Source of the DNA: Saccostrea cucullata
Taxonomy: Eukaryota
Assembly (NCBI RefSeq): GCF_032062105.1
Contig: NW_026919036.1
Location: 62,001-126,000, forward strand
DNA: 64,000 bases
Direction of reading: 5' to 3'
A model generated the notes under the pieces. It made no database searches. It was not told the origin of the DNA and worked only from the letters and a program-made list of their open reading frames with translations. Made by a program: the position numbers and the translations under genes. Shown in pieces: positions 4,461 to 51,300 of this stretch (positions are counted from its first letter, which is position 1; each line of letters begins with the position of its first letter).

Positions 4461-6037
4461 TTTCAATAAAAACTTTTTGGGGAACTCACGAATTCGTTTT
4501 ATCTCATGAGTGGGCAATGTCAATGCAAAACAAATATTATGTAACTAGAAAGGTGCATAATATTTTGAGTCAAGAGTTTATCTCTTCCACAGGTGTATCA
4601 ATGTACATATTTAGAACAAGTTATTTATCCACCTGTACCCATTTGATCTATCCATTTTCAAAGACCTAGAAAACTGGAAATTAGAAAGCTAAAACACAAA
4701 TAGTCCTGTTGAAAGTTCAGTACTTATTTATCTCTCCGTCTTCCTCAAACAACTTTGAGTATAAATCGAATACGCTGCCAAAATAAAATTTTGGAAACAT
4801 TTACCATAATATGAAAGCCACAGCAATGGCGACGTCATTAAGTTTCAGCTAAGTCTCTTTAACAGAACAGATTACTTTTTTAAAAATATCTTAAATTTAT
4901 ACATGTATAGAAATACTAGTTTTCAGATTGCCCTAAAGACTATAAAATTTTATGTTTTGATTTTTCTCAGACTGCGAGAGCTGCCTGGTCTAATCAGATC
5001 GAGTTTGTCTTGACCCTGATTGGGTATGCTGTAGGGCTAGGGAACGTCTGGAGATTTCCGTACCTTGCATACAAAAATGGAGGAGGTAAATTGAGGAAGT
5101 GTTCGAAAAAGTAACATTAATTAGTTATAAACATGGTTCTGAGACCTTGTTGTGAGAAACTTTGACTTCTTTCTGATATAATTTATTACATGAAAATTTG
5201 TTATTTGATTAAAAAACACAAGTCTTACAGACATTTTCTCAAAAGGTGTTTGCTTCGTTTTATCAGAAGTGAACGTTTTCTAGTTAATCCATTCATGTAT
5301 ACACCTTTTCTGGTAAATTTTGTCATCATCCACAAAGTGAAGGAAAATCAATTCTGCTCACTTTGACAGGTGCTTTCCTCATTCCATACTTTGTTTGTCT
5401 GGTCCTTATTGGAATTCCGCTCTTTTTTCTGGAATTATCCTTTGGTCAGTTTGCAAGCCTGGGCCCTATAAGAATATGGGTTGTGAATCCGGCATTCAAA
5501 GGTAGGTCATTTGCGGATGTAACTCCTTCTCATACTTCCAAACACCTGTATGTCTGTACAGATCAATGATTCATAAAGTAATTATTTTATTTACAACCTG
5601 TACTTTTAATGCATTTTTTTTTATTTTCAGGACTTGGGTTTGCCATGACAATTATATCAGCATTAATCGCCCTTTATTACAATGTCGTCATTGCTTGGTG
5701 CTTGTATTACCTGTTCGCATCAATGACGTCATATTTGCCCTGGCAGGATTGCGAAAACGAATGGAACTCGTGCAAGTGTATTGATAAAACCAGAAACTTT
5801 TCCAGTCCAGATCCATGGAATGGAAAAAGACCCGAATGCTGTAATGATATTGTGATCATTTGATGTCTAGCTTCAGTTTTTTATATTGCATACAGTGTAG
5901 GAGTGTTCGAATTCTTTACCGTTTCTTGTCGTCTTTTGCAGTGTCCCAACTCGCAGAAATTGTAAACGCTACCAAGAGAACACCAAGTTCCGAATATTTT
6001 ACGTAAGACGTAGATTACTGTTCTTAAAACTTTTAAA

Positions 6038-6224
6038 TACTGTAGATCACTTAATTTTCGAGAGAAATAAACTCTTTTTGAGATAATTTTCACGAAATGT
6101 GTCATTGTTATATAAGCTTAATTAAGGAATTCTATTATACACGAGAATGAAATTTTCGCGAGCATATCCTCTCACGTAATTACGCGAAAATAAAGTTCTT
6201 GCGAATAAAAAGTGATTTACAGTA
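6038..6224. mobile_element. MITE, Tc1/mariner-like ends
   Basis: TACTGTAGATCACTT ... AAGTGATTTACAGTA terminal inverted repeats with TA ends. Confidence 0.65.
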
Positions 6225-7767
6225 TTTCAATTAACGTCCTTTTATTTTATAAAAAATAAAAGGTTTTGAAATAGTCGTGTCTTGTGTTTATAAATAGGGA
6301 GAAAGTACTCGGTTTTTCAATTTTAAGATTTTTAAATACCAAAAAGAGTGAAATGGGATGTGATTTTGTGTAACTTGCTGCACATTTGTTATTTTTTTTT
6401 ATCCAAAGGGTCGGAAAGGTACACAATGCACTAGTACTCGGTCTTTCAATTTTAAGATTTTTAAATACCAAAAAGATATGAATGAAATGTTTTTTTTTAG
6501 GTCCGAAGACTCATATTTTTTGTTATTTTTTTTATGTAGGTTGTGTACTTCACGGCCATTTTCCCATACATCTTGTTGACAGTTTTGTTGGTTCGCGGAC
6601 TGACTCTGAGCGGATCTCATGAAGGTGTGATGTACTACCTGACCCCCGACTGGGACAAACTCACGAAAGCCAGTGTAAGAAAATGCTCCACTTAGACATT
6701 CAAATTCTTACAATTACATAAAGTCGTCGCCATGAAGAAGCTTTTAACGCCATTTACTGGTTTTAAGGTATGGTCTGATGCAGCAGTGCAGATCTTTTAT
6801 TCTCTCAGTGCGTGTTCAGGTGGATTGATTGCGATGGCGAGCTATAATAAGTTCAACAATAATGTCCTAAGGTCTGTTGTATATCCCCCCGAACATTGAC
6901 GATCAATTTATATAGTAAATGAATGTGCAGATATTTCTGTAGTTAGCATTATTATTCTATAACTGTAATTATTATTTCTAGGGATTCGCTGGTTGTCCCC
7001 TTTATTAATTGTCTTACAAGCTTCTATGCCGGGTTTGTGATCTTCTCAGTACTTGGATTCATGGCAGATTATAAAGGCGTCGCAATGGATAATGTTGTGA
7101 AAGGAGGTACCAAAAACAGATGTAATATTCTTGAAAAAAGAATTCTTATTTAAAATGAAAGCACAAGAAATCATGCTTTTAATATGTCTTGTATTAATAC
7201 TATCTCTCCAGTATATAGGAAGAAAAACGTTTTAAATCTTAACATATACAAACTACAAAATTTAATAAGTTTCAAAGCACAACAGATTATCTTAATTCGA
7301 TAACGCAGATTGCAAAATTTAAAGAAAATCATTGGCTCAGTTTTATTTCTTTCTAGGACCTGGACTTACGTTTGTGGTTTACCCAGAAGCCCTTGCGCAG
7401 ATGCAGGTGGCTCCATTGTGGGCTATTCTATTTTTCTTCATGATGGCCACCCTGGGATTCAGTTCTCAGGTTTATTCTAAACTTTTATTTCAATTACTAA
7501 CTATAGCAAAGCAAATATTATTGCTCTCTTGACAGCTTTTAGAATAGAAATTTTCCACTCATAAGGTTATGAGATCAACTTTATAAAGTGTAAAATGATA
7601 TCTTTCTATAATTTTAGTTTTCAATCACGGAGACAGTTATTACAGGGATTGTGGATGAATTTCCGCATTTCTTCAAAAACAAGAAAAGGTTGATTTTGTT
7701 CCGAGCCGGAATTTGTGGCACTGCATTTCTCCTTGGATTACCGATGACTTGCAGGGTAAGCTATATG

Positions 7768-8220
7768 CACTGGCGGATCCATGGGGGGGGGGGGGCTACG
7801 GGAGTTGCACCCCCCCCCCCTTTGGAGTTGTAAAAAAGTAAGAGAGAGAAAAAAGTTCCATTTTTTTGTTGTTTTTTTACTATAAAAAATGTTAAGTGAA
7901 TGGCTAATGTTGTAATATGTAAAGAAATTCGGTTGTGAAAAGTTCAAAACAAAATGAAACCCCACCCCCTTTTAAAAAATAGGATTTTCAGGTTGGAAGA
8001 TTTATTTTTCTTTCTTTTTAAAAACTTTCCATACAAGTACCCCTTCCCAGGCTGATTAACCTCCCACTTTTAAAAACCATACTCCACCCTGTATCCTATT
8101 GAGTTATTTAACTATGTGTATGTGTACAACGTATGTTATAATAACTCTTTTCCCCTTCACCCCTCTTTGAAAAATCCTTCAACCCCCTCCCCCTTTGAAA
8201 AATTTCTAGATCCGCGCCTG
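7768..8220. mobile_element. MITE inserted 12 bp downstream of a 5' splice site
   Basis: Ends CACTGGCGGATCCA ... TAGATCCGCGCCTG; ATATG direct repeat at 7763-7767 and 8221-8225. Confidence 0.65.
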
Positions 8221-10915
8221 ATATGTATAGTCGGGATTTATTAGTTCCAATCTATAGAAATTTGACAGAATGAAAATGATGTTACTTGTTATTTGTTATA
8301 AAATTTGAATTTGATTATTTGATATAAAAAAAACATCTTCAGAACATCAGGGGTCCCGAGTTTACTCGTGTCCAGGACACCTGACGTATCGAGGTCTCAA
8401 GAAAGCAAAACTGAAGTAACAACTAATAGAGAAAATGTTCAACAACCGAATTCACTTACAAACAGGCCCTAATAATCTTCATACTAATCTTAATGAGTAT
8501 ATTTTATGGTTATTAGATTCACAAATGTCCAATATAGCGTAAGAAAAAAGGTATCTTTCTCGTAAGATTGCACTCAATGAGTAATTTTTCGAACACTTTT
8601 GAAAACAGTAGATTTTTTTATTGGCAGGGTGGAGAATATACTCTCAACCTAATGGACACATTCGTTGGAGGTTTCCCTCTCTTATTTGTCGGATTATTTG
8701 AGATCATCGCCATTATCTATATCTATGGTAAGTAGGATTTGAATGTCATTTGTCCATTAAACTGACATAGACATTTGATGTGTGTAAAAGAGTTTAAAAT
8801 TCAAAATTAACAACTTTCAGGATTTTTCCGCTTTAAGAGAGATATCGAGATGATGCTGGGTTCTAACATTGTCATCAACATATTCTTCGGCTACTTTGCG
8901 ACCATGTGGCTGTTGATTTCACCCTTGGCACTACTGGTAAACTCATATGTACTACATGTATCTATTATGAGATAAACTTTCTCAATTTATATATATTGAT
9001 AAATATTTATTCATCAAAGATTGGGCCGACGAAGGTCCATGTGGAGAAACGCTGAACCAAAATCACTATAGACATTTCATAGTTCTACTGTAGATGACAT
9101 TGCAAATAAGATGTACACAGTATTTTTGTAATTTTGTTTAAAATCATTTTTTCTTCAAATATTTGAACTGTTTGATTAGTGTTATTCTACCTGAAAAACT
9201 TTTGATAAATATACTGAGTCAAAAATTACATTTTCGAACAGGCTGTGATAATTTTCAAAGCTATTCAGACCAAACCTGCCACAGACGGAAGTTACGTTTA
9301 TCCAGACTACGGTCAAGCTCTGGGCTGGCTTATGGTACTGGCACCATTGATATGGATTCCAGTCATCTTCTTCTTCGAGGCCTTCAGAAATGGTCTTGGA
9401 AAGGTATGATTTGATTATCTTGTTCTCTATATAAACATTTTCACCCTTTTTTTCTATAGAATAAATAAAATAAAATCGATTGAGTTTCCACTGAAATGTT
9501 CCTTGTGATGAGATGTATGTAAATGGCAATCTTATCTCCGCGAATAACACTATCTTTAGAATATTTGCAGTCGAGAATACTTCCAAGTTTAAACAATTAA
9601 AAGAAATAATTTTTTAAGTCGATAAATATTCTGTCTGAAAACCTGCTGCATTATCAGAATTCCAGTGCAATATCGAATGAGGTTCTTATCATTTTTTTGT
9701 TCTCAAGTTACTGATCAAAATTACCTCTCCTGAAAAGAATTGGGGACCAGCTTTGCCAGAAAATCAGATGGGAAGATACAGCGAACAAAACAAAGCTAGA
9801 AGCGAGATGAAAAACGGAACCAACGGTTACATTAAAAGTCAATCCCAACCTCCAATGGAAAAATACACAGCATTCCAAACTACCGTTGTCACACCAAATA
9901 TGGAAATCACACCAAATGGGAAACCAGTGCAACATACAGTGAAGATAGATCATGAAGAACAGAATGGACAGGCAAGAGATAAAGAAGTAGTGGAAAATGG
10001 AACATCGACAGTGGACCCTCAGGAACCGAATGCTCAGTTCAGTAATCCAACGTTTGAAAATGATGAGGCTCAGGTAACCAATACTGTACAATACTAAGAG
10101 GGACAGTTTTTATGAATTGTCAAGAGCAGTTGTTTGAAATCTCTGAATAGTCAGATGGAAGTGAAACTAACTGTAAATAGATTCCGTTGAGCATTTACAG
10201 TCTCTTATACTTCAAACACATTGTAGATATTTTCATCGACTTGGTGAATGGTTTGCTTTCAGGTTATAGTACCCATATTAACGTGTTGATTCTTGTATAT
10301 CCATGTAACCTCATCAACTTAAGATGTCTACGTGTATATTTTATTTCAAATTCTCAAACAGTTTATCTTATTTCACGTTACCAGTATTTTTTTATTAAAC
10401 TGTTTTTAAAGAATTTATTGTCAAATTCGCCAGGAATAGTCCATAGTATATCTAACACATGAAATTATCTATGTCACTGTGTTGTAATCTCGTTCCCAGT
10501 GTTATGGAAGAAATATACTAAGTACATGGAAAGTATGAAATACTGGCAACAAGATATTCTTTTAAAAGAATGGAATGTTAAACGGAATAATTTGTCCATT
10601 TGTATGTCCAAAACACGTGTATTTGAAAGAATCTTAAAATTGAAATAATTTATATATATTAATATTTTTTGATGAAGCTTCTAAATTCTGCTGATAAATG
10701 TTTAGCTAATTGGAATATTCTTTATTCACATACAACTTATCTTAAAATGTTTGATCTTATTGAATGAAACTTTAATGAAAAAACCCAAACTCACAAATAA
10801 ATAGATAGATCTTTAATTATTATCAAAATTGATTAACTTTAACACAGGAATTCTTCATTTATACATCGTTAGAGTCTATATATATGGAGTTGTACGCTGC
10901 AGGGCAATTTTTCTT

Positions 10916-13900
10916 TCATCTGAATCCAAGGAACTTTTTGATTTTCCTGCTAATACTACTTCTCTTTTTTACAGTTACCTGAAAAGAAAATATGAGAGAC
11001 ACGTGAATTTTTAATTGCACTTACAAATTAATGGGATACAAATGTTTTGTATTGTTATTTACTTTGGATGCTATAATTGCAAGAACTTACCACGTCTTTT
11101 TCTACAGATTCATTTGTAAACGAGTCAAGCACATCAGTTGATTTCTCAGGAATACTGGGGTTTTTTGCTTTTTTGTTTGACTGCAGATTCCACTCACTCT
11201 ATTTAAAAAAAAGAAGTTTTACTCTCAAATTGCTCAAGCATAATAATTAAATTACGTATAAATTATAACTCTTTCCAGTTAATGTTTATACATGTATACT
11301 TCAATGAACGTACCTTAAATTCTACCACTCCAAAAAGAAAGAGTTTTCTAGGAATAAAGCAGCTGTCATTTTCATCTTTTTCATTGCATTCAAACTGTAA
11401 AAAATAATCAAAAAATGAATTAATCCAGTAAATAAATAATTTGTTGCTTATAAAATATATATTGTATAATAACTGGCATTTTATTTTTGTTTTAATCAGA
11501 TGAAATAAACATTTCTCATCTTTTAACCCTTTTAGTTTCATGTTATTAGATTGATTCAACTGTTAGTTGCAAATTGCAAATCTGTACATATTGCATGTTA
11601 TAATACATAGAAAAAGGGACAATTTTAATTGACAAACTAACAAGTAACAACACTAATGATTCTTCAAAAAATGTTTTACATTGTTTCTGTTCTACACCTA
11701 CTAAGACTATTAGTCTTTTCCTTACCTCTGACTTTATCTGCTGTGTTTCCATTTTGCTACATATATCTTTCAAGTCTTTGGTTTCCTTGTCAGTGCCAAT
11801 TTTGGCTTTCAATGGTTGAGACATATTTTGGGTTTTGCTGTTTAATATTAAAAAAACTTCACTTTAGTACCAACATATAAAGGGACATTTAAAAGTAAAA
11901 AAAATATTCCACAACATACAAATGTACAAGTAATTGTGAAAAGGGACTCATTTATCTATTAGGCATATATACATGTAATTTAACATTATTACAATCAAAT
12001 GTCAACAATTGATTATACTATGAAGTTAATACCTGGCATTGTCAGGAGCTATCTCTGGATTTGCTCTGCACTCTTCAGTCACTCTCTGCTGGTGTTCTGT
12101 GTCCTTTTGTAAGGTCTGGTTCAAAATGAAAGACACCTGTAAATAAAATATTCGTATATAAAATTGATACTTTGGGATCTCCAAAAAAAGTTTGTATGAC
12201 ATATACCTGTACTTGCATGTAATTACTCAAGCATTTTATATAGTTATAAACATATAGATTTTATAAATGTATCCATACCTTTGTTTCTCTTTCTTCTTCT
12301 TCTACTTTCTCTGACCAATTGTACCCAAACTTAAGTATTTCTAGTTTTTCCTCCTAAAATTATAACAGCCAAAATAAGATATTTTACAAAGAAACTAACA
12401 TCACTTTAGTTAAGTACATTAAAAGGTAGAAGTTTTCAATCTGGAAAGTTCACGGATAGCTTAAATAGTTTCTAGAAAATGACATTTTTCATTATCTTTC
12501 AGTAAATTTCTTGAATTAAACAGTATCATTAAAACATAACATCAGATCTACTTACCAAATTAGTGACTGGCCCCTCGCCGAAATCCAAGATTGTCTCTCT
12601 TTCATAATAAAAAAAAAAGTAAACATTTAATCTTACATGTAACTTGAAGCCACTGTTTTATATACACTAGATTTACAAATTTTACATTCTAAATAGGAAA
12701 GAAACATTTGAAGGAACAAGTATCCAGTACAAATGTAATACTCAAATAAACTATTTTTCAAAGCTATTTCAGTCTGAGAGAAAAAGTGTTACCTTGGGAT
12801 ATCATTTCTTTCCTCTCTGGGAATCTTTACTTTGGATTTGACCTCCATTTTGTTCATCTGTTCAACTGTTGGTTCATTGCCTTCCTAGAAATCAAATTTA
12901 TAAAATTACACTTAAGGTACATTGATACTCTGATAAAAGAGATAACTCTTAATGACATATATGCCTATTATTCCTTTACATATTTTCCAACTTGAAGTGC
13001 CTTTTTTGTCCAATTTTGCCCCGCAAGCTATGCTATAATTGTTTGTATTTTACATATAAAATACATTTCTTTTGGAAAATCATCAAGGTTCAAGCAACAT
13101 TTTATACATATGTATGAGTGAGCAGAGGGTTTATGAACTTTAAATAGAATGTTTTGCTATAAAGTCAATACCAATGAGATTTACTGTAATCGACATACAA
13201 GATCATTAAATCTTGAACTGTAGTAAAATTCTATTATTTCACACAAAAAATTACGAAGTACTACATATACATGTATATTACTCAATATTACTCAGTATTT
13301 AATTACCAATCACTTATACTCTAATTGACAGTACACATTCAGTTTGTTAAATTAAAATTCAGTCAACCTCAGTCAAATCGTTTTACCTTTGCTTCTTTCT
13401 CTTCCTCTTCAACCCTCTCAGCCCAGGAGTAGGTGAACTGTAGTATTTGTAATTTTTCATCCTAAAAATTTAAGATTCAAAGTTTAAACGGATGAAATCA
13501 TATAGTAAAAAAAAAAAGTTAATAAGTCGGTACTTGATTGGGTTGTATTCGATAATCATATGCATTTAAATCAATACCAACAATAAAAGCATTGTTGATT
13601 ACTATTATCATAACAACATAATTTCTGGGGAAACTTTTTTTTCAGTATTAATTCTTCAAAAATAAATACCTCGAATAAAAAAAATAGATACACCAAAAGA
13701 AAGCAGATCTATGGTTTCCTTACCAAATTTCTCACGGGCCTATCGCCAAAATCCAAGACTGGCTCTCTACAACAGTGAAAGCATGTAATGAAACTTTCAT
13801 ACTGAAAATGTCAAATTTACTGGATGGTGCCAAATGTAAATTTAATGTAACATATTCAATATTTAGAGAAAAAGATAAGTAGTAGAATTACATTTTTCAT

Positions 13901-14554
13901 GGTAAAACTAGAATCCTAAAGACTCACAGAGTTCTAGTCTTACCTGGGAATTTCCTTTGTCTCTGTTGTTAAAGTATTTAATTGACATTCATTCTTAAGT
14001 TCATCTTTATCCTCTAAAACTGGTTCGGTGACTTCCTAGAAAAAGATATAAAGAAGACGTTTATTCAAACTTAAAAAAGGGAAATCAATCATATTGAAAA
14101 ACAATTGACACATGTTTAAATGTGTAAGGGGAGTTATAATAAATCTATTGTGAACGACATGTAAGTCTTGTCAGAGTTAAACGTGTAACTATGTTGTTGC
14201 TCTAGACAAATTTCTAGATTTGCATAATTAATGTACCTTCATAAATCTTTCTTGCTTTTCAACTTCTTCAACCCAAGTATAGCCGAATTTGAGAATCTGT
14301 AGCTTCGTATCCTGAAAACATCAAGAAGTTTTTTTTAATTCAAAAGCAGATGTTTTGGTAATTTATGTACGACCAATTTCTTTGAACGAATTACTTCATC
14401 TGTATTTTTTGCAATGAATTAGTTGAAAAAGGTAGTTACCAGTATTCGTCGTTAAAAAAATCCTTCATAATATTGATGTGCAAGATGTGAAAAATGCCAA
14501 AATACTTACAACATCCTTAACTGGCTCACTTCCAAAATCCAATACAACGTCCAT
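10916..14554 (-). CDS. Uncharacterised 335-aa acidic protein with three ~70-aa tandem repeats (LDFG-x-x-PV ... KL-x-IL-x-F-x-Y-x-W-x-E-x-VE) and a basic amphipathic C-terminus
   Basis: 13 GT-AG exons join in frame with no stop: 14554-14510, 14311-14237, 14035-13944, 13766-13724, 13461-13387, 12884-12793, 12598-12556, 12353-12279, 12136-12033, 11837-11726, 11394-11314, 11198-11091, 10978-10916 (1008 nt). Starts MDVVLDFGSEPVKDV, ends KKRSSISRKIKKFLGFR*. Confidence 0.85.
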
Positions 14555-15709
14555 GATTGTCTACAATCAAAAACGAATATTTATGAATATACGTTTTCTC
14601 TTGTCAAGAAAAAAAAACAAGAAAAGAGTGATTTAGTCGTGAAATTTACCGCTAATATGTCTGCAATCTGCATCCACTTTTGTTATAGTGATAATTATTA
14701 CGTCACTTTAATTGTTACGTTTAAGTTTGTGTGTGTTGCTTTCATGACGTCATACACAATATTTTATTTTATCCAAATCATACTTTTATTATGCCAGGAA
14801 CGTTGGTGTAAAATTGTTGAAAGGACAAGAGGAGATATCTTGTATCTTACATGTACTAAGTAAATTAAACAATAATTCTAACCAAAAACTACTTATATGA
14901 ATTATTAAAGGATCTCCAAAAAATATTTCCATTCCTAGAATTGTAGACCCAAAATACCGATTTCATTTTTTTGTTGTTGTACAACTATTTTCAACCAAAA
15001 CGTAGCAAAATTTACGAGTACGTGTTATAATACAAGATTTAAAAAAAATAATTATAGAGTGCTAGGAAAGTGCCTCATTAATTGTAATTTACAGTTTTAG
15101 TTAAATGGACATTGACGCATGTGAACGCATAAAGACATATTTATTTATACCTATAAGAAAAAAATTGCATGCTAATCTGCCAGTAATATGGGTGTATAAA
15201 TGCTTTTTAAAAACTTACTAGTTAACGAAACAAGAAAGAAATTAATTTCTAGTCAAAAACTCGAAATAGTTTTTTCATATTATTCGTTCCAGGAACTGTA
15301 ATTAGTTTCAGAAGATGGGAAAAATTGGCTTAAATCTACATGTACCTCTGAAGAAACAATGTCATTAAGTTGATCGAGGGGTTATTTCATCAAAGATGTT
15401 CTACGGGAATCAAGGATTTACTTTCGTCAAATACCGTGGTTTATTGTATGCAAATGTGGTTAGGTCATATTATACAGTGCTTTAGATTTAAACAGATACA
15501 GAAACTTTGGTTTAACACATAAAATATAGATGTTTCCATTCCTTTTCTGGGCACAAGGAATGCTACACATGTATTTACGCGTAAATTTTTGATACACAAG
15601 TTTAAGAGCGGTAGCAAGAATATGATGATTGTTCTATTTTTCTATATCAAAAAAAAAAAGCCATTGCTCTTGAATCTCAAACTATCATGTAGTATATAGA
15701 TCTGTTTAT

Positions 15710-16297: not shown

Positions 16298-19200
16298 TTA
16301 GAACTTTGTGGCAGTTGTGTCCCCTGCTTCTATTACGTAAGCTTTATTATCATATTCTTTGGATTGCATTTTCATCATGTCAACAGAGTAATCGTTTGCA
16401 GGGGCGGATCCATTTGAAGTGATGTCATTGAAAGCGACGGAATAACGACCTGTTCTGTTCTCAGGTAAGGCGGGTCCCCAGTCTTCTGTTGGCTGCAAAA
16501 AAATAAAACAAAATCAGAAATGAAAATTCGTGGATGAAATTTGAAAAGTAGTCCTTCTTCAAAAATATCGAATGTTGTGTTTGACTGTGATGATATACAT
16601 GTATATTACCTTTCCAAGCCCCTTTTTACAGCTGTAGTATATAAACCAACCAGGAATTCCAATCAAGCACGTGACTTGAATTAACCAGAAGATCACCTGA
16701 CCACTGTCTGGGTATAAATATCCATCACTTTCTAGAGGTTTCGTTTGGGCAATTTTAAAGATAATTACAGCCTGTAAAAAGAAAGAAGAAAGAAAAATTA
16801 CATCATTCCGACTATTAATTTATTGAAATAATAGTGTTCATTAACTTCTTTTAACATTAAAAATTAAAAAAAATAAAATAAAAATTAAATATAAAACGAA
16901 ATATGTTTTAGTTGCCAGATGTATCAGATGTAATAATTTAAGAAGTTGTAAATATCAAATTGAAATTTTAAATTAAAAATACTAAACGTCGCCCGCATAT
17001 GGCGTATGGGGTAGTAGAGCGTCTGTTCTAGAGTCGCAAAGCAAGGAGTTAATTCTTATATCGAGGGTTCTTATCCCACTGTGGGACCTGGAGACCGGTC
17101 CTTCGGATGAGACCGTATCCTAAACCGAGGTCCCGTGTCGCAGTAGGTGCTGGCACAAAAAAGATCCCTTCCTGCTCAATGGCCCTCAGAGCCAAACTGT
17201 ATAGAACAAATTTGTAGCTCTCCATCGGCAAGTGGTGGCGTCTCTATATGAGTGAAAAATTCTCGAGAGGGACATATTCAATCAAAATAATAAACTAACA
17301 ATCAGACTGTAATTTTTCTTTCAAAAAAGGTGGCGAATTTCGAAGATATGTAGATTTTTAAACTTTTTGTTTGGAAACTGACCAATAGCGCCAACGGAGA
17401 AATAAGCAACCAACAGGCTCCAAAATACCAGAAGCAGGGCTTGACACAGAGTCGGTCACCAATCATCATCTCAATGTCCCGCTTAAATCTGAAGAATCCT
17501 GCAAATGATTATATATTTTATTGATTTCAAAATATTTAACAAAATATTACTGTTTTATTTACATTTCAAGCATCTAATATGTTAACAAAATATTAACTGT
17601 ATAAAACGGTACTTATTCTGGTCCTTGGACTTACCATACACGTAACATAAGAGAATCAGCTCAAAGAATCCGACAAACAGCAGCGGGAATCCACCGACAG
17701 CATTGTCCACCAGAGTCAGCATGTAATCACCTCCCTTAATAGACCAAAAAATAGTTTTCTAATTAGTGTTGATCACAGATCCAAAAATAGAACAAGGACT
17801 ACAACTATATAAATTATCAGTATTTCACTAGATCAATTTTATATATTATACTTTAGTTAGTCTTACTCTAGTTGTCATAGGCAAGCCCAAAAGAAACCCT
17901 GTCATGCAGATTCCAAACCGGAAACCCAGAACTCGCCATTTTGATCGAGAGAGGGCCGGAAATTCATCCAGAAGACCAGTCATTACCGTTTCAACAATGG
18001 AGAACTAGTAAATAACATTATAAATTGAATGATTGTTTTAAGAAATAAACAACGACTAATTGTTGCGTTATAATACCTCAGTTTTAATATCGATACATTT
18101 GTATAATTTATAAAATATTACCGCTGAGCTAAACCCTAAAGTCGACATCATGAAGAAAAACAATATTGACCATAACGGCGCTACCGGCATTTGAGCCAAT
18201 CCCTCCGGATAGACAATGAACACAAGACCAGGACCTAGAATATATTGAATTAAACTGAATTGTGCAATTTAGAAATATTTACGGCGCAGAAAATACATTT
18301 TCCAAAAATAGAAACTCGGAACTTCAAGATATTCTTTAATGGATATTTAACTTTAAATATTTAAAGAAACACACAGACTTTAATAGTCTGCCTAGAGGTG
18401 AACACTTAATTATCATTTTAAACAAGAGTTGTAAAAGTCCTAGCAAGTTTGTTTTCATATGATAAATATGGTTTACCTCCCTTGGCCACTTCCGGAACCG
18501 TGACGCCTTTAGCGTATGCCATAAATCCCAAAACTGAGAAGATGACAAAACCCGCATAAAAACTCGTTAGGCAATTAATTAATGGCACCAAAAACGTATC
18601 TCTGAAAAAACAACAATACCGTTTGTTGAATTTATCACTAATAAGGAAAACAACTAGTATTTTAATGATTTCCGTTCATTAAACGCCATTCTCGCAACCT
18701 CTTGGATTCTGTTTCAAATCATATCTAACAGTCACGGGTTGCCTCAAAACCCCTAAAGTTGTGAAGATGGTACAAATTCTTGCTTAAATACAACAGAAAT
18801 GCACCGAGCAACACCGTACATTCCATTTAGTCATTTAGTGATTTTTTTTTTCTAAATTCATGCCACGATGAGCATACAATAACATTGGACCAAAAAAAAA
18901 TAAACATCATGTGCTTGGTTTGCTAGAAAGGTACATGTAAATCAATGAGTTTTGAAATTATATTTACAAGTACATGTAGTAACCTAAAATATTGTCCTTT
19001 CCTGACCACAGGTACTTGTGGACAGGACCCTCTCCCCCCTCCCCGATATTCAACCCCGGGGCTTATTGGACATTTTTTTTTTCAAAAATTATGTTTATTA
19101 CACTTATTCATCATGTGTACAATATGAAAAAATCCTCAAAACCCAAAACAATCGCTCCGCAAAAAAATACCCCACTAATGTATAGTGGGGTATTTTTTTT

Positions 19201-22200
19201 GTGGAGCGATTGTTTTGGGGTTTTAACGATTTTTTCATATTGTACACATGATGAATAAGTGTAATAAATAAAATTTTTGAGAAAAAATGTCCAATAAGCC
19301 CCGGGGTTGAATATTGGGGGTGGGGGGTCCTGTCCACAAGTACCTGTGTTCCTGACGTAAGAAAAATGCCATGTTCACAATTTTGGTATTTACTGTAAGT
19401 ATGCATACCTCAGAACATTGTTATCAAACTTATTGAAGCTGGCCATTGCTATAAGTCCTCCCTGACAAGCGCTGAGCGAGTAGAAAATTTGGACTGCAGC
19501 ATCCGACCATACCTAGAAAAAGCAGGTGTAAGTATTATTTTTTTTATAATAGGACAATTCACAGGTAAGCTTGGACATTCAGTAAGGCTTGGCACTCTCG
19601 ACGTTACATAATTTAGCATCTGAAATTTACAAAGGTTTCATTCACTGTTGAAATATACATGGGATAAAAAATTCGGACAGATGCTAATTAGTGTATCGAA
19701 TAACCATTAACATTGTCTCGTCCGGCAAAGATGTGGGGCTTAAGTCGTTTCATTGTTGTCAATAACAATATAATGATGTTATTAATTTCTTAACCAGTGA
19801 GAATCTATTCGCCAATTGACAGACGCTAATTACATAGAACCGAGAATGCTGCACCTTACTGAAAGTCCAAGCTTATATGAGAATTGTTCTAAATGTGTCC
19901 TAAATACATTCCATTTTATTCATGACTTAGTATGAAAAGAAATGTTTATATTTTATGTGTGCATCGTGTCTTCTTTAAAGTAACATTAGGCTATTCCAAG
20001 TTTTTTCTATGTTTAGCGTCCGCGTGCGCCTTGGTTTTTGACACCCCATACAAGAAAAAACACACAACATCAGGTGTCCAAAAATTGATTAATTAAGTTG
20101 ATTTTTTAAAATTTTGTCACTTTCTCCGAATAATTCTGTACAGTAAGTTGCACTGGGTGAATTTAAAGCATTTAATCCTTTGTTTTTGCTCAAGAATAGA
20201 TATTTCTACTACTAAAGCTGTTTATTTAGATCACATCATTTGAAGGGCGTCATTTTAATGACTTTTAAGCCTGTGTTTTATGTTTTGGCTTGTGTGTTTT
20301 TGCGAATAGGTAGGTAAGTTTTTGAAAGATGGGTGGACGCTAAACAGAGAAAAAACTTGGAATGGCCTTATCTATTGGTTGCAAGAATACATTGCAAATT
20401 TTGTTCCTTTAGAGCAATCAGCTTACGCTGGCATCCGTGAGTTTATCCAAATCGGGAGTTAAGTAGAAATCTATTCCTTGTTTGTAACCATCTAGTGTAA
20501 GTCCCCGGATGAGAAGAGCTGTGAGTAAAACGTATGGGAAAATAGCTGTAAAGTACACAACCTGGTAAATAAAACATTCAAATTTACTTAGAATTTTAGT
20601 TAGGAACTTTTTAAGTTGCTCTTTTTGAAAAACGGCTGTTTTACTTCAGAAGCACATAATTTTACAATACGTACTTTTCCAAGTGTTTTGATACCCTTGG
20701 ACAATACTATAAAAATTATCGTCCAGGCTAGAAGGTTACACAGAGTTACGTCCCATTTCACACCTCCGGTGGACTCGAATCCGTCCGTGATCTCCAAAAC
20801 CCGACGTCTGAGAAAAGGGGAGAGAAATCTTTCAACATTCCTTCATTCTTAGTATTTATAATTGTTAGAAATGAGTTGTTTTGTTTTTTTAAAATCTTTT
20901 AAGGAAGCTCTAAACAGTGCTCACTGAAGAGTTCTATTCAAGTGGTAGTTTTAAGAAGATGAACTTATCTGCCTTTTGATGAAAGAAATAAACGGAAAAC
21001 TACAATAAAAGACACGATTTGGAATGCAGTAATATACTCACTTCTTACATTTTTTCAGTGTTATGAGCTTCCTTTATGTAAAAATACGGTTTTATATATA
21101 TACTTCGTTTGCTTATGTATACCTGAAATACTCTTCACTGACAGAAACTCCGGTTGTGTTTACAGGATAATCAAAAGTCACTGAAAAGATACAAATATTA
21201 TAATGTAAAGAATTTTCCTAGTTTAATCCTAGACCGCAGAAAAAATTCAAGTGAAAAGAACATATCAAGAAATTAATGCTTGTATTTTTGAATATTATAC
21301 TTTCATGTAAATTACTTGAATCTGATTCGTCGAGAAACATTTGATAAAAAACACTACTACCCGCTGAATAATGAAGCCACGCCCTCCTGCGTAGCAACAG
21401 TCAACATTGCTTGACGACGGGTGGTATTCCAAAAAATTAGCGACTGCGCGGAATTTATGCGCGCACGGTTCACTCTAATATGTATTTGTATAAAACATTC
21501 AGTATAATATAATAAATATTGCATGTAGTTGAGTGTAACATTGAAAATTTTCACCCCTCGAAAACCATTGTCAACCTCGGCTGCGCCTCGGTTGACAATG
21601 GTTTTCTTGGGGTGAAAATTTTCAATGTTACACTCAACTACATGCAATATTTATATAATATTTCTTGTCTTTGGATTTAATATTTCCCCCTAAAAATAGA
21701 ATTCTTCTTACAGCACTCATTGCGTGCTCCAAGCCAGGGATCAGGCAGTGAAAAATTCCGTTTTCCGTCTTGACACAGACAGGTATTCCAGTTGTTGTCG
21801 CAATCTTGCCACGGTAGATATGACGTCATCGAAGCAAAGAAGTAGTACAAGCACCAAGCAATAATGACCACATAATACAGGGCTATCCCCATTGATACTG
21901 TTATCATGGCAAACCCCAATCCTATTTAAAAGATGAAACTGAATAAATATATAGAGATAACTAAATCTAAAATATGTTATGTAATTTTTTTGCACTAGAA
22001 AAAAGTATTTTAAGCATATATTGTCTTATAAGAAATTTAAGATTCGTTTTCCCTCTGTTTATTTACTCATATAAATATTGCTTTAGCGCTTATGATTTTC
22101 CAAGAGAAAATTTAAATTAGTGAAGGCACACATTGAAAGATATCGTCTCTTTGTTTCACAATTTTATCAAAATATCAGATATTTATTTCTTTGAGAGTAA

Positions 22201-25200
22201 GCTTCCCTATCAGAGGATATATTGAACCTTAATTTTTTTTTTTTTTTTAAATATTTGCCTTTCATCAAAAGATTTATTTTCCATATGTTAACGGGTCCGA
22301 GACTGGCAAACTGTCCAAATGCGATTTCTAGATAAAACAGGGGGATTCCAATGAACACCAGACAGATGAAGTACGGGATGAGAAAAGCCCCTGAAAGTAA
22401 CAAAGAATTACAAGGTTAAATAACATCTTATTGAAATTCAACACAATTAATGTCGCATGTTACATATAACTGATCTTATTACCATGATACAGTACTTTAT
22501 GGTCCGTAGTCGTGCCTGGATTAAGAGGAAAATACTATATGCAGGGTCTTGTACAAAATTTGATTACATACGACTTTTATTTGTGTTTTAAAATAAAGAC
22601 ATTATTCGGTAACCAAAATTGGATAATGCATACTCGTGAATATAAATGTCATCCTATGAACTTAAATTTACACATTCGTCACACCGTTGTACAGATCGGG
22701 AAAATTGCGTGTTTTTGCATATGATGACAATTCTATTGTGCATTGTAAGTAGATTTAATGACATTTACACTTACCTCCTCCGTTTCTAAATGCTAAGTAG
22801 GGAAATCTCCAGACATTACCCAGACCGACAGCAAACCCCACACAAGTCAAAATAAACTCCACAGGGTTCGACCACTCCGCTCTCTACAATATAATTTTTA
22901 AAAACTTAAATGATCAACCAATTTAAAAAAAATATTTTTATACCCCCCGCTTGAAAAGTGGGAGGGTATACTGTAATCGGTATGTCCGTCTGTACGTCTA
23001 GCTGACGTCCATCCGTCTGTCTGTTACGCTTTGGGGTACCAATCTCTTATCCGCAACTCCTCTTATACCACTGAGTAAAATTTAATGAAACTTTCATAGA
23101 AACTTTATTACATATTGCCATTGTGACCTACTATTTTACTTTTTGATCCGACACATATTTTGGGTTTCCCGGCCACAGCAAAACATGGACTTTTCGATTA
23201 TAATCATATGGGAGGGTGGGTATCATTTAGTGGGCTCATTGCTCACAGTACCTCTAGTTTTTTATTGTGAACGCTTTTAAAGTGTGGCAGAAATTCACAT
23301 GTTCCCACGTTTTATGCTTTTTGTGTTCATTGTCATTTCTTTGTAAGTTCTGATTAGAAAAAAAAAAGATTCATTGCTTACAACATGCAGTATTATTCGC
23401 AAAGGTCGTGTATCGTCATATTTCAAAAGACCACAGTAATTGCAGCAGTGGAGTTAGAAATATTTCAAACTCTATCTCAGAATTAAGGTCAGGTCATATA
23501 TTATTCTCCCCCCCCCGGTCATTAACTTATGAGAAGATAAAATCTTCAAGGTCATTGAAATTCCAACAAGCTCCTTTTAAATTAAAGAATGAGATCTGAG
23601 AAGTTGTGATTGACATGTTGGTAGTTAACGCCTACCCGATTAATCTTTGTGTAAAATTCGCGATCAGATGGATCGCTTTTATGTATTCCAAAATACAATG
23701 TCGTAATTATGTTAAAATATATACATATAAAATGCATTGTTCTCGATACTTTGTAAATATATATTTGTGTTGAATTTTTTTTCAATAAAACCTATTTTGT
23801 AGGCATCCCTTCAAAACAGTTCTGTTCTAAATAACTTTGTTACCACACAGAAGTTTGTTTTATTTGCAGACTTCGGAAAGTGACATTTAATAGAACATTG
23901 TTACTTTTTCTTGTTAGTCACTTATTGGTGTCTTGGTTAATTTGAAAAAAATAAAAAAAGAAATGTTTAATTTTTTTTGGCCGAACCTGAAGATTTTAAC
24001 GATCGTAAATTTAGATGTTCTTATGTATTTTGGTAACTTTTGACTGACGCCAATTAATAATCTACCTCTTCTGCGCCTTGACAATTTGTAGACAGGTATA
24101 TTTATATACATGTATATGAAAAGTACCATATATCACAAACTAACTGCTGAAATTTATACATTTATACACTTTAAAATTTATTAAACTAAGTGACTGATTT
24201 GTCCTTTATAGTTTATAATTAGCAACGTATAAAATTTATTTCTAAATCTAAATAGTCTATATAGTCGAAGGATAGTCTATCGCATTATATGGGGGATAAG
24301 CACTCCTCGATGGATTTCGTTTATAACATTGCCACTGATTTATGGGTGATTGAGATGACCGAATGAATGACAATTTTTGACTTATCTCAACTCTATAAAG
24401 ATAGTTACCCGGAACACAGCCATCGACATTCAAGAACAAAACTTTCTATTTGAGCACTGAATGTACTTGTACATGTTTTGTACATGTTGCAGAGTGGTTA
24501 AAAAAGTATACCAAGTGTATATAATGCTAATATTGGTTCTTTTTTGGGGTCTTTTAAACGTTTTAAATTTTGTCCCGCTCTTTTCGATTCCAATTCTGCA
24601 GGTTATTTAAGAAGCAGTTGGCAGACGGCAAACAAATGATAACAGGAAATTGATTGATTTTCAAACATTGCTTTTCAAAGCCCCTACAAGAAGTGTTTAT
24701 TACTACCCAAAACCCAACTGATAAGACAGGTAAAAAGGTTAAGTAATCCTGAAAGGGCATGGTGATAAATATTTGAAAATAACTCCTTGTTAATATTTCA
24801 TTTTCCTTTCTTCGTCCTTGATTTGTGGGGAAAATAAAACATTTCGAATATATACGTCGTCTAATAAATCTGTAGTACTTGGTGTCAATGATAAAAACAT
24901 GCACTTTAAGTATATTACACCAACATTACAGTGAAATGTTTATATGTATAAAAATGTCAGTGCATATATATACGGGTTGATTTTGTCGGTAAGGGCTTTG
25001 TCGGTAAATGGTGCCATAAATGAGTCCAAATTAACGCAAAAGTATACAATAATGAACTATAAATTTTTGTTGAAAAAAGTTGTTTTAACGGATGAAAAGT
25101 CTGTATTTACATTCATATCTTTTCACGGATTCGAAATCAGTATTTTGACGCGAATTATTGTCTTTGAAAATTATCGAAATAATTTATTTTTGACTTGTTT

Positions 25201-45068: not shown

Positions 45069-45380
45069 ATACAGTTTTTTAAATTTATGAAATACATTCC
45101 CATTTTCCTATAAATTATATTTTTAAAAAACAATTCCTTGTTGCTAACAGCGTCAGATTATCAAGCAAAAAAAAAAAAAAAAAAAAAATGAAGGAAACTT
45201 ATCACAATTCTATTCAGTGCCAGCTAGTATTGAAATTCGATTTTTTTTCAGGCTGTTCTGTAACAATTCGGGCTTGTTCTTGAGGCGTCCGGTAAACCAG
45301 ACAGACTCCATCTTTTCGCCAGATTTCGGTTCAACTTTTTATTTATATACAAGCGGAGCTTGTCCACCGAATAAGCAAAC

Positions 45381-48300
45381 ATGGCGTCATTCGATCCCAA
45401 CGATCCGGATATGAAGTACCTGGCTGTCGACAGGAAAGCTCTGATGAAGGAGCAGACTGTCCCATTTGACGGCAAAAAGATGTGCTGGATTCCCGACGAG
45501 AAGGAAGGTTTCTTGGCCGCTGAGATCCAGTCCACCAAAGGAGAGGAGATCACTGTCAAGACCATTGAAAGCCAAGAGGTAAACAAAATAAACAAACAAA
45601 AAAACAAACAACAATAATCATTAAAAAAACAAATTCCTTGGTTTAAAAACGAAAAAAGCTTAATGATTTTCAATTGAATTATCAAAAATTTTCGGAGAAT
45701 ATCGAGCAAAGACTGTTTTAGACCATAATATTAACTTGAAAAAGTCTAAACCTTTGTGTAACTTTTGTTCCAATATTGTCATTAGACCAGGACAGTGAAG
45801 AAGGATGACATTCAGCAAATGAATCCACCCAAATACGAGAAAATTGACGACATGGCCAACATGACCTACCTGAACGAAGCCTCTGTGTTGCACAACTTGA
45901 GATCCCGTTACAAGTCTATGTTGATCTACGTAAGTCTCATAAAACATGTAAAAATCGCTCATAATATCCATTTCACATAATTTGTTTATTTTGTATATAT
46001 ATTTTAAATATTTTGTTTTTTCTTGTTATTAGACCTATTCCGGACTTTTCTGCGTTGCCGTCAACCCCTATAAGCGCCTCCCCATCTACGGCCAGGCCCT
46101 GGTCGACAAATACAGGGGTAAGAGGAAGACTGAAATGCCTCCCCATTTGTATTCCGTGGCTGACAACGCTTACCAATTCATGGTACAAGATCGTGAGAAT
46201 CAGTCCATGTTGATTACGTAAGTTTGCCTTCTTTTTTTTTTTTTTTTTTTTAGAAAAATCATTTTTTAAATTATTTTTTTTTTTAAATCTGCGTCTTGAA
46301 GCTCAAATTGAGATAATGGATTTTCTAATTTAATTCTCAGTGGTGAGTCTGGAGCCGGAAAAACTGAAAACACCAAAAAGGTCATTCAGTATTTCGCCCT
46401 CGTGGCAGCTGGTCAGTCCAAAAAGGATGATCCAGAGGAAAAGCCAAAGGACGACAAGAAGGTAGCGAAAATGTTTCCTCTTAAAATATTCCTTCAATAT
46501 AATAATAATTATAACTGTAAAAGTCTTTATCGGTATGATAATGGCATTATATATGTACTTAAATTGCTAATTTATATTTTTTTTTTACTTTTTTCTTTTT
46601 CCCCTCTCCCTTTTCTTCATAAATTTTCCGATTATCCTTCCTTAAATCCTCTCAAACTATTCTGATCGTTTTCTCTCCTAAATTCGCCAAATTTCCTTTC
46701 AATCCTCTTCTCGGTTCCTCCCCTATTTTCTTGACCCTCCAAACAACAGGGAACCCTAGAGGACCAGATCGTGCAGGCTAACCCAGTACTTGAGGCTTAC
46801 GGAAACGCCAAGACTGTCCGTAACAACAACTCCTCACGTTTTGTAAGTTTATTTTTAAATCCGTTATCATCCACACTTTGTGCTGAATTTATCTTTCATT
46901 AAACCTAAACCATAAAACAACTCAACCCATATTTTTTTTATTTTGATTTTTGGACTTAAAATGATGTCATTTTCCCGATATTTTAAAAATGAACGAATTT
47001 ATCACCTACCTCAGTGCATGGTTAATGGTTTACGTATTTGCCCTCCTTGATGTTCCAAAAAAAGACTTAGGAGATACAAAACCTGTAATAAAATTTACAC
47101 CTTTTTTATTTTTAATTCCAAAATAATGTCATGGTTTTTGATGTGAAAATAACCTTGCATGTATTTTACCTTTTTGGAATATTCGTTTAACCATAAACGA
47201 ATAATACAGCACTGACAAACTTTGATCCACCGGTGTGTTTTTAACAAATTCCTACTCTCCCTCGTCACTAGGATAATCTGGATCCTCAGATATCCGCCCA
47301 CCTTCCTAAGCCGCTCCCCCATCCTCACTCCCTCCTGATTTTGTCTCCTCTCATTTTGAGGATGCAGTGAACTGTAAGTAAGAAAGTTTTCCTCATTGTC
47401 AATCAGTTTTAGTTTCAATTTAGCTAAGTATTTAATATATTTATTACGTTTTTAAAATAAATTTTTATGGTTAGAAAATACAGTTTTTACACGACTGTAC
47501 TTTCATTTTAATGATTTTCACTTAGCCTTTTTCTTTCGTAAACAGGGAAAATTCGTCCGTATCCACTTCGGTCCCACAGGAAAAATTGCAGGAGCCGACA
47601 TTGAAACCTGTAAGTTTATATTTTATTTGTTAGTTTAAAATCATTTTTAAATCCTTATTGAAATTTTAGTTATTAAAAATACATGTTTAAATACATAGAC
47701 CTGCTGGAGAAATCTCGTGTCACTTACCAACAAACTGTTGAGAGAAACTACCACATCTTCTACCAGCTCCTGTCTAACGCCATTCCAGAGCTCAATGGTA
47801 GGTGTCTTCTTCAATGTTTATGAAACTTATTTTTTCCACTTTTAAATGATAACTCTATAAAGTCATAAATAAATCGTACCAGAATATTTTTTACTCCGTA
47901 TTACATGCAGCATTACACTACCGGTAGTTACTCATCATCACCAAAATGGAGAGGACATAAAAAGGTGGTCGTGAAATTTGCTGTCTAATCCGTCAATGGT
48001 ATAAAAAATATAATATGTTATCGTCTCATTCACGTCATATAAATCAAGTAATGGCATTCTGCTTACAGAACTTTTATTGGTTTCTCCTGATCCGGCCCTC
48101 TACAGCTTTATCAATCAGGGTGCACTCACTGTCGATGGCATTAATGATGTAGAGGAAATGAAAATGATGGACGTACGTTGTAATAAGCCCATTCCCGTCT
48201 TGAATACTCTTTTCTTCTTTCAATATAGAAACCTGGTTCCAAAAGAAATCTCTCTACTCTGAATCTCTCTACTCTGAAGAGATTTAAAAATCCCACCAAA

Positions 48301-51300
48301 ACCTTGACCACTTGACAATGTCGAACTAATAAAATTTTCTTTCAGTCAATCAATCCCTGCTCCCGAACCCAATTTTCTTTTAAAAAGAATTCCATAACCT
48401 TTTTCCCGGACTCGATCTCTTTACATTCTTAAAAATAATATAACATATCAAACTAATAGTTTCTTTTTTCAGAAAATGCAGCCAAATTTCTTGAATCTCG
48501 AAATCCATACCGAAACCCTAACCTAAAACTACTCCAACGAATCTATCTTCTTTCACTCATATACTAGTATTCTCTTTCAGCTGGCAGTTCTTGTCCAAAA
48601 AGTTGAAAACTCTGACAAATACCTCCGAACTTTCTCATATTTTTTTTATAATAACATACTCCAAAACACCCCCTACCGCATATTTCACGAATTTCTAAGA
48701 CTTGTCACTCACGATTTTCCAAACGTCCCCTATTTCCCCCACCTAAAACAATTCTGTTTCAGTTTTCCATTCAGACTATTCGATACTGCATTCCAACTTA
48801 TATTTCAATATGTCATTTAATACTGATCTCTCATGGGATATTCTCCCAGATCAAACGGTGTATGTCATATCCTTTCATCCTTATCCCACCTTAACTCTTT
48901 TTAGAACCTCTACTGGTTTCCCCCGATCCCGCTCTCTATTCCTTTATCAACCAAGGTGCTTTGACGGTTGATGGTATTGATGATGTTGAAGAAATGAAAA
49001 TGGTCGATGTATGTATATTTGAAACAACAACAACAACAAAATCAATCTTTGTATTTTGATTCAATGTAATTTTTATCTTCGCGTATGAGTATGTGTTGAC
49101 TTCCATTTTATAAATGCGCGATTATGTATCATTTAGGAAGCTTTTGACGTTCTTGGTTTCACCACTGAAGAGAAACACAGTATGTACAAGTGCACAGCCT
49201 CCATCATGCATATGGGTGAAATGACCTTCAAGCAGAAGGGTGAACAGGCTGAAGTCGATGGAACTGCTGGTATGCTTTTTTTTCAACAACCGTACTACAA
49301 ATTCACGGTATTCATCCAGGAAAGAAACGTAAACAAAACCTATCTCATGATTATTCTCGTTTTATAGAACCTGAAAAGGTTGCTTTCTTGCTGGGTATCA
49401 ACGCTGGAGACTTCTTGAAATGCTTGCTCAAACCCAAAGTCAAGGTCGGAACCGAGTTTGTCTACAAAGGTCAGAACAAAGAGCAAGTTACCAACTCCAT
49501 CGGTGCCTTGGCTAAGTCTTTGTACGATCGTATGTTCCAATGGCTGGTCAAGAGAGTCAACAAAACTTTGGACACCAAAGCCAAGAGAAACTACTACATC
49601 GGTGTATTGGATATTGCTGGTTTCGAAATTTTTGAGGTAAGATATTATGAAAACAATGTGTATTCAAAGACAAAAAAACGTCATTGTATACTAGTATTGT
49701 ACAAGCACGTGCATTATCTTTTTCATATGATCCATATTTCTTTTACAGTTCAACAGCTTTGAGCAGCTGTGTATCAACTATACCAATGAAAGACTTCAAC
49801 AGTTTTTCAACCACCACATGTTTGTCCTGGAGCAGGAAGAGTACAAGAAGGAAGGTATCCAATGGGAGTTCATTGACTTCGGTATGGACTTGGCAGCCTG
49901 TATCGAGCTCATTGAGAAGGTAGCGTATCAAAGATGTAGTTTGTAAACTAAAATATTACATACTGGTTTGTCAAGTTTTAGAATTAAGACGAAAAATTAA
50001 CATTATTTTTCAGCCTATGGGTATCCTGTCCATCCTTGAAGAGGAATGCATGTTCCCCAAGGCTGACGACAAGTCATTCAAGGACAAGCTGTACCAAAAT
50101 CACATGGGCAAATCCCCCAACTTTGGAAAACCAGGAAAGGCTCCTAGGCCTGGCGTTCCCGCTCCTGACTTCTCCTTGGGCCACTACGCTGGCTCTGTTG
50201 GTTATAACATCAGCAATTGGTTAGAGAAGAACAAGGATCCAATCAACGAGAACGTCGTTGCCTTGCTGTCCGAGTCTAAGGAACACCTTGTAAAGGAACT
50301 CTTCCAAGCTCCTGAACCAGAAGCCGGCGGTGGAAAGAAGAAGAAGAAGTCCTCTGCTTTCCAGACCATCTCAGCTGTCCACAGGGTATTAATGCACTCA
50401 TTTTATCCTCATTCACTTTTTTATATTTTCAGCTTTTGTTTAGAATACCTTTCTTTAGAGTTAAATGGCGATTAATTGACCTTTAAACATATTTGTTTGC
50501 AGGAGTCTCTGAACAAACTGATGAAGAACTTGTACAGCACTCATCCTCACTTCGTGCGTTGTATCATTCCCAACGAAATGAAACAGTCTGGAATGATTGA
50601 TGCCGCTCTTGTACTCAATCAGCTCCAATGTAACGGTGTACTTGAGGGTATCAGAATCTGTCGTAAGGGATTCCCCAGCAGAGTCATCTACTCTGAATTC
50701 AAACAGAGGTAATTGATTTGCCTATATTGAAAAGAATTATAATTGCCTCATGCAGACTTATTATTGAAACTGTTCAAAATTTTGTTTTACAGATACTCCA
50801 TCTTGGCCCCTAATGCCATTCCACAAGGCTTTGTTGATGGCAAAGTTGTGTCTGAAAAGGTTCTGCTTGCTCTGCAGCTTGACCCTGCAGAGTACCGTCT
50901 TGGTAATACCAAGGTATTCTTCAAGGCTGGTGTACTTGGTATGCTTGAGGAAATGCGTGATGAACGTCTTTCTGCCATTCTCTCAGGATTCCAGGCTCAT
51001 ATCAGAGGTTATCTGATGCGCAAACAATACAAGAAATTGCAGGACCAAAGGTAATTTTTACCCTATGTAATCGTTTATAAAATCGTTCGGTTTAACGCAA
51101 ATTTTAAATAATTTTCTCATTGATAATCATACTAGAAAATGAAATACTTTAAATTTTTCAGAACTGCTCTTGCTATGATCCAGAGGAACATCCGTAAATG
51201 GCTTGTCTTGAGAAACTGGCAATGGTGGAAACTGTACGCCAAGGTTAAGCCCATGTTGAATGTTGCCCGTGCTGAGGAAGAGATGAAGAAGAAATTGGAA

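Follow-up and report, generated by a model that had tools for sequence, protein, structure and literature searches.

A family of oyster genes encoding repeats that resemble the SLIP1-binding motif

A minus-strand gene in a 64,000-nucleotide stretch of the Saccostrea cucullata genome (contig NW_026919036.1, positions 62,001 to 126,000; the whole stretch is called the window, and coordinates refer to it) contains three 75-nt exons encoding TWVEEVEKQE, SWAERVEEEE and NWSEKVEEEE, a reading already made in an earlier note and now confirmed at each of the three. These strings recall the SLIP1-binding motif (SBM), and the locus raises the question of whether the protein docks on SLIP1 and related MIF4G proteins or carries a repeat of another kind. 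SLIP1 forms dimers whose two sites lie 65 Å apart; SLBP contacts it through Trp94, Val98, Glu99, Glu102 and Asp96, the SLBP helix starts at the Trp, and a small residue follows the Trp at a shallow pocket, while the key residues of DBP5 are W6, A7, V10, D11 and E14 (PMC3763545). The eIF3g motif SWADQVEEE corresponds to residues 11-19, and the zebrafish SLBP string is NWGDEVEEQE; both the eIF3g string and the key residues of DBP5 agree with the motifs given in the note. To our knowledge, only three natural SBM carriers have been described, each with one motif.

The gene model comprises 14 coding exons, running from 14673 down to 10916, with GT-AG introns throughout. The product has 345 aa, of which Asp and Glu make up 21% and Lys and Arg 16%. 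The exons are, in order of translation:

14650..14673, minus strand: first coding exon, 8 codons, with the start Met; agrees with the RefSeq model (P0039) and with paralogs L031 and L032; provisional 5' limit
14510..14560, minus strand: repeat 1 exon A (LDFG..PV half)
14237..14311, minus strand: repeat 1 exon B, 75 nt; SBM-like helix at 14249-14278, with a deviating Val at +1
13944..14035, minus strand: linker exon 1, weakly constrained
13724..13766, minus strand: repeat 2 exon A
13387..13461, minus strand: repeat 2 exon B, 75 nt; SBM-like helix at 13399-13428
12793..12884, minus strand: linker exon 2
12556..12598, minus strand: repeat 3 exon A
12279..12353, minus strand: repeat 3 exon B, 75 nt; SBM-like helix at 12291-12320
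12033..12136, minus strand: charged spacer exon, with homologous exons in L031 and L032
11726..11837, minus strand: charged spacer exon; the RefSeq model ends shortly beyond it
11314..11394, minus strand: exon with the second family motif, F-x-P-R-K-L-F-L-F-G-x-x-x-F-K (motif at 11314-11358)
11091..11198, minus strand: spacer exon
10916..10978, minus strand: last coding exon, with a conserved basic, partly amphipathic C-terminal helix and the stop

The three exons B are bounded by AG/GT, lie in phase 0 at both ends and have their Trp codons at 14275, 13425 and 12317. On the minus strand between 10.9 and 14.7 kb, their motifs are the sole matches to W-x3-V-[ED]. Since a short LDFG..PV exon precedes each exon B, the repeat spans two exons and about 38 aa. 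The motif ends each repeat, as previously described, but it makes up the final third of a conserved unit of 38 aa and not, at 10 residues, the whole repeat. Likewise, the limits 12279-14311 first assigned to the locus hold the three exons B but leave out exon A of repeat 1 and the two ends of the gene (10916-14673). Exon A is joined to exon B in the RefSeq models of Saccostrea and Crassostrea relatives, as in the model given here; these relatives match no Pfam model and are not recognised as a family.

The RefSeq protein of this gene (LOC134277992, P0039) is identical to the model over 263 residues, after which it runs into an intron and ends. Its end lies three codons into an intronic acceptor (11630-11640), past the exon at 11726-11837. 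The last three exons (10916-11394), which it lacks, are intact, conserved and included in the model of the S. echinata ortholog. LOC134277992 is thus probably a truncated annotation, the other reading being an alternative end. The S. echinata protein (P0002) is the ortholog, its gene lying in collinear DNA with the same SLC6 genes beside it. In the window, these neighbours are two convergent SLC6 (SNF) transporter paralogs, one on either side of the gene at about 5300-10100 (plus strand) and 16300-22900 (minus strand), and this arrangement recurs in S. echinata (L041). The ortholog retains the three motifs as well as the C-terminal exons, and the motif, whose conservation had been proposed as a check, is also kept across paralogs. 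Repeats 1 and 3 match the repeats at the same position in the ortholog and in a paralog at 83-88%; within the gene, repeat 1 matches the other two at 60-63%, and repeats 2 and 3 match each other at 72%.

How closely do the repeats follow the SBM? Numbering the Trp as 0, all three repeats of the window gene have W0, V+4 and acidic residues at +5 and +8. Among 92 unique oyster repeats, W0 is found in 99%, V+4 in 97%, E+5 in 100%, E+8 in 97% and an acidic +2 in 90%, while +3, +6 and +7 are variable; the alignment was anchored solely on the upstream IL-x-F, and some selection remains in these figures, as the loci had been preselected by whole-exon similarity. The contacts seen in SBM crystals are matched determinant by determinant in 85 of the 92. 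The +1 residue is Val in repeat 1, Ala in repeat 2 and Ser in repeat 3 of the window gene; over the 85 core repeats it is small in 58 and Val or Ile in 22, against Gly or Ala in SLBP, DBP5 and eIF3g. Known carriers and oyster repeats therefore share W0, V+4, acidic +5 and E+8, often an acidic +2 and a polar -1, and a helix from the Trp within a disordered region, which in the oyster proteins is a prediction. In contrast to the known carriers, where a single motif lies next to a folded RNA-binding or helicase domain, the oyster proteins have 1-6 copies, each fused to 26 more conserved residues, and no folded domain; they are also lineage-restricted and multicopy, and their +1 residue is often bulky.

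The brevity of the motif had led the earlier note to allow for chance resemblance, a caveat on which a search of 177,635 PDB sequences bears directly. A 14-residue helix profile built from oyster sequences alone gave two matches, the SLBP SBM peptide (4JHK_C, E 0.0018) and human eIF3g 11-19 (E 2.2). Both are validated SBMs; the same search did not return the DBP5 peptide. The value of 0.0018 overstates the case, since the helix segment was cut out with the hypothesis in mind, and longer profiles give E 0.12 for the whole exon and E 0.36 for the whole repeat, level with unrelated matches. When the Trp is left out of the profile, neither SLBP nor eIF3g is retrieved. Given the Trp, the probability that composition supplies the remaining three matches is 0.001-0.01. 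PDB matches to APOBEC2 and OspC (E 0.1-0.5) were rejected as chance. As far as sequence comparison reaches, the resemblance to the SBM is specific rather than loose.

Conservation extends well beyond the motif. Exon B has at least 150 genome matches and is under purifying selection, so its motifs are not a product of chance. Pooled dN/dS is 0.14 for the A exons, 0.16 for the B exons, 0.11 for the two C-terminal motifs (11314-11394 and the last exon) and 0.55 for the linkers, in comparisons of the window gene with its ortholog and two paralogs that all share the window sequence, and so are non-independent, and in which dS is high. Both halves of the repeat are under purifying selection; inside exon B, dN/dS is lower over the first 11 codons (0.06) than over the motif (0.17). 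The conserved positions are spread evenly along the 38 residues, ten hydrophobic ones being nearly invariant, and the 26 residues upstream of the motif (LDFG..PV..KLxILxFxY) are at least as constrained as the motif itself. Compared with the PDB, this upstream half yields nothing credible, and it is part of no known motif. Likenesses of LDFG to the Cip/Kip inhibitor domain, UBA, the G3BP-type hydrophobic-x-FG, the DDX6-type FDF and clathrin or GAE motifs were considered and set aside, none being supported by the searches. In divergent subfamilies the LDFG exon, the KL or the Tyr has been lost, yet IL-K-F and W-x3-V-E-x2-E are still kept, which makes the SBM-like helix the deepest core of the repeat. 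By sequence, the protein behaves as an SBM carrier, an assignment that stops short of class membership since known SBMs are isolated islands among variable neighbours and here the upstream residues are equally conserved.

Outside the repeats, two more conserved motifs occupy the C-terminal region. The first (F-x-P-R-K-L-F-L-F-G) has 89 matches in the genome and no credible match in the PDB. It resembles an RxL cyclin site or, in P0011 and P0040, where a Tyr leads it, an eIF4E-type site (Y-x4-L-hydrophobic); neither these likenesses nor a PIP-box reading of the C-terminal motifs drew support from the searches. The second, the basic C-terminal helix, is present in all subfamilies, with Cys clusters in two, and its hydrophobic moment is just marginally above that of shuffled sequences (fraction 0.04-0.64). 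C-termini of this kind, basic and in some members flanked by Cys, may point to membrane association more than to a function in mRNPs.

These features have to be weighed against other origins of the motif, and structure prediction bears on two of them. In searches and folds the window gene was used exon by exon, and joined sequences were those of database proteins. For one repeat, AlphaFold predicts helices at 15-21 and 28-41 (mean pLDDT 80, pTM 0.39), the latter starting at the Trp as in SLBP; for the three-repeat ortholog, pLDDT is 58 and pTM 0.25, with long low-confidence stretches and repeats that are not confidently packed. A small self-associating fold, formed by homo-oligomers or by packing of repeat on repeat, could bury L, F, I, Y, W and V and make the motif structural, as the ten nearly invariant hydrophobic positions and the well-scored two-helix repeat would suggest. 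This is improbable given the low pTM of the single repeat and the ortholog, the pTM of 0.12-0.14 in Atlas models (all of them monomers), the surface-type Glu that is invariant at +5 and +8, and the existence of single-repeat members. Searches of Pfam, PDB sequences, folds (best match Z 2.9) and the Atlas for a known folded repeat domain were blank, which does not exclude a fold. The monomer models give no sign of a compact fold that buries the Trp and Val, and the earlier expectation of a mostly disordered protein agrees with the predicted low pTM and the helix starting at the Trp. It is very unlikely, similarity of the motif notwithstanding, that the family is a captured piece of SLBP, eIF3g or DDX19 turned into a dominant-negative paralog: the likeness is confined to 13 residues, the SLBP RNA-binding domain of the genome maps to one other contig, and no SLBP RNA-binding, RRM or DEAD-box Pfam domain was found in the exons or in ten full-length family proteins, where Pfam returned noise only.

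A more serious contender, though the odds are still against it, is that the whole 38-aa repeat binds a partner unrelated to MIF4G, having converged on a common helix face, and that the family is a membrane or cortex scaffold. The even conservation would fit, positions 0, +4, +5 and +8 are those that any one-sided helix would conserve, and the chance match calculated above is not negligible across a genome-wide scan; the frequent bulky +1 and the basic, in two subfamilies Cys-rich, C-termini point the same way. However, the agreement with the SBM concerns the identity of residues and not just their spacing, the helix has no other match in the PDB, and a hydrophobic moment barely above shuffles argues against a scaffold at the membrane. 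Docking of the repeats on MIF4G proteins, with the family serving as a disordered multivalent adaptor or competitor, is the preferred reading, with a probability of roughly one half.

If the repeats do dock in this way, each 38-aa unit would be a bipartite binding segment that folds upon binding. Its last helix (W0, V+4, E+5, E+8) would enter the SBM groove of SLIP1/MIF4GD, CTIF or PAIP1, while the upstream LDFG..PV..KLxILxFxY might add contacts, either with the MIF4G protein or with another partner. With several repeats, avidity could exceed the low-micromolar binding of the lone motifs in SLBP, eIF3g and DDX19, enabling the protein to out-compete them or to cluster dimeric receptors, and the conserved C-terminal motifs would determine its place in the cell. 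We infer binding, the identity of the partner, competition, location and tissue, and to speak of a decoy or of a tether, or of a role in gametes or embryos, is conjecture. The genome has an SLBP locus and several MIF4G loci as candidate receptors; a PAM2 scan to locate PAIP1 gave noise only. PAIP1, a third and more abundant receptor that also reads the SBM (bioRxiv 10.64898/2026.07.31.742013), is a candidate partner that the earlier note did not have, as it had neither the dozens of genes nor the two C-terminal motifs. SBM receptors are pan-metazoan (bioRxiv 10.64898/2026.07.31.742013).

Precedents exist for parts of this scheme. The motif of DDX19B tethers and inhibits CTIF (PMC8373075), and DDX19B also recruits PAIP1 (bioRxiv 10.64898/2026.07.31.742013), a case of an SBM relocating or holding back a MIF4G translation factor; unlike the oyster proteins, DDX19B is a conserved enzyme with a single motif and acts at the nuclear pore. 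Coronavirus NSP3 occupies the SBM groove of PAIP1 (bioRxiv 10.64898/2026.07.31.742013), which shows that outside proteins can use it, but it is viral, unlike the oyster repeat, and no relative of the repeat was found among viral contigs. A bolder proposal, tentative and rather doubtful, is that rock oysters expanded dozens of genes for disordered proteins in which extended motifs for docking on SLIP1, CTIF or PAIP1 are strung together. As decoys or tethers that the host itself encodes and that bind with high avidity, these proteins would switch translation of the histone, pioneer-round or poly(A)-linked kind, and an eIF4E-like or cyclin-type motif near the C-terminus might take part as well. 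Should docking hold, the family would be the first dedicated multivalent ligand for the SBM groove and an example of translational control gaining a new layer in one lineage, and its short peptides would serve to test selectivity among SLIP1, CTIF and PAIP1. Even with a different partner, it represents an unannotated, strongly selected 38-aa repeat family, together with a corrected truncated RefSeq model.

The gene and its family are real, judged from the sequences, and their function is as yet a proposal. The listed exon-B matches form 89 clusters of one to four, distributed over 74 contigs, so the family likely occupies up to about 90 loci in Saccostrea cucullata; these likely represent dozens of genes rather than 90, since some are presumably allelic copies in a fragmented assembly. 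A full library search returned 31 proteins from S. cucullata and S. echinata plus one single-repeat protein from Crassostrea virginica (E 5.8e-4 with the 25-column profile), all named as uncharacterized or '-like' (LOC134277992, LOC133192929 and LOC111122280 among them). The library search named no relatives outside oysters, which does not amount to absence there, as the 25-column profile scarcely detects single-repeat members. A word search with a paralog tail exon gave no match, P0013 was rejected as a member on account of a spurious repeat match, and no paper naming these loci or the family was found. Database members carry one to six motifs, and trivalency, which the note had taken as a possible design, is thus not a rule of the family.

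Subfamilies differ in their architecture. In one (L021-L030, L034), the gene has three repeats that hardly differ from each other (88-99% nucleotide identity in L021) and, after them, one exon of 400-1300 acidic codons of low complexity; multiplication or homogenisation of repeats thus occurred more than once, independently of the subfamily in the window. Another, divergent subfamily (P0031, P0036, P0038) has 2-6 motifs, lacks the LDFG half and ends in a Cys-rich C-terminus after the basic helix. At two further places (G000:C20596:16440-16791 and G000:C12488:22215-22550), matches to the repeat exons are separated by just 120-150 bases, much less than in spliced members, and these copies may be intron-poor or processed. 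Elsewhere, the window holds a myosin II heavy chain gene (45375-56710, plus strand), a LINE-type reverse transcriptase-like frame of 701 codons (27612-29714, plus strand) and C1q-domain exons on both strands (31934-33935).
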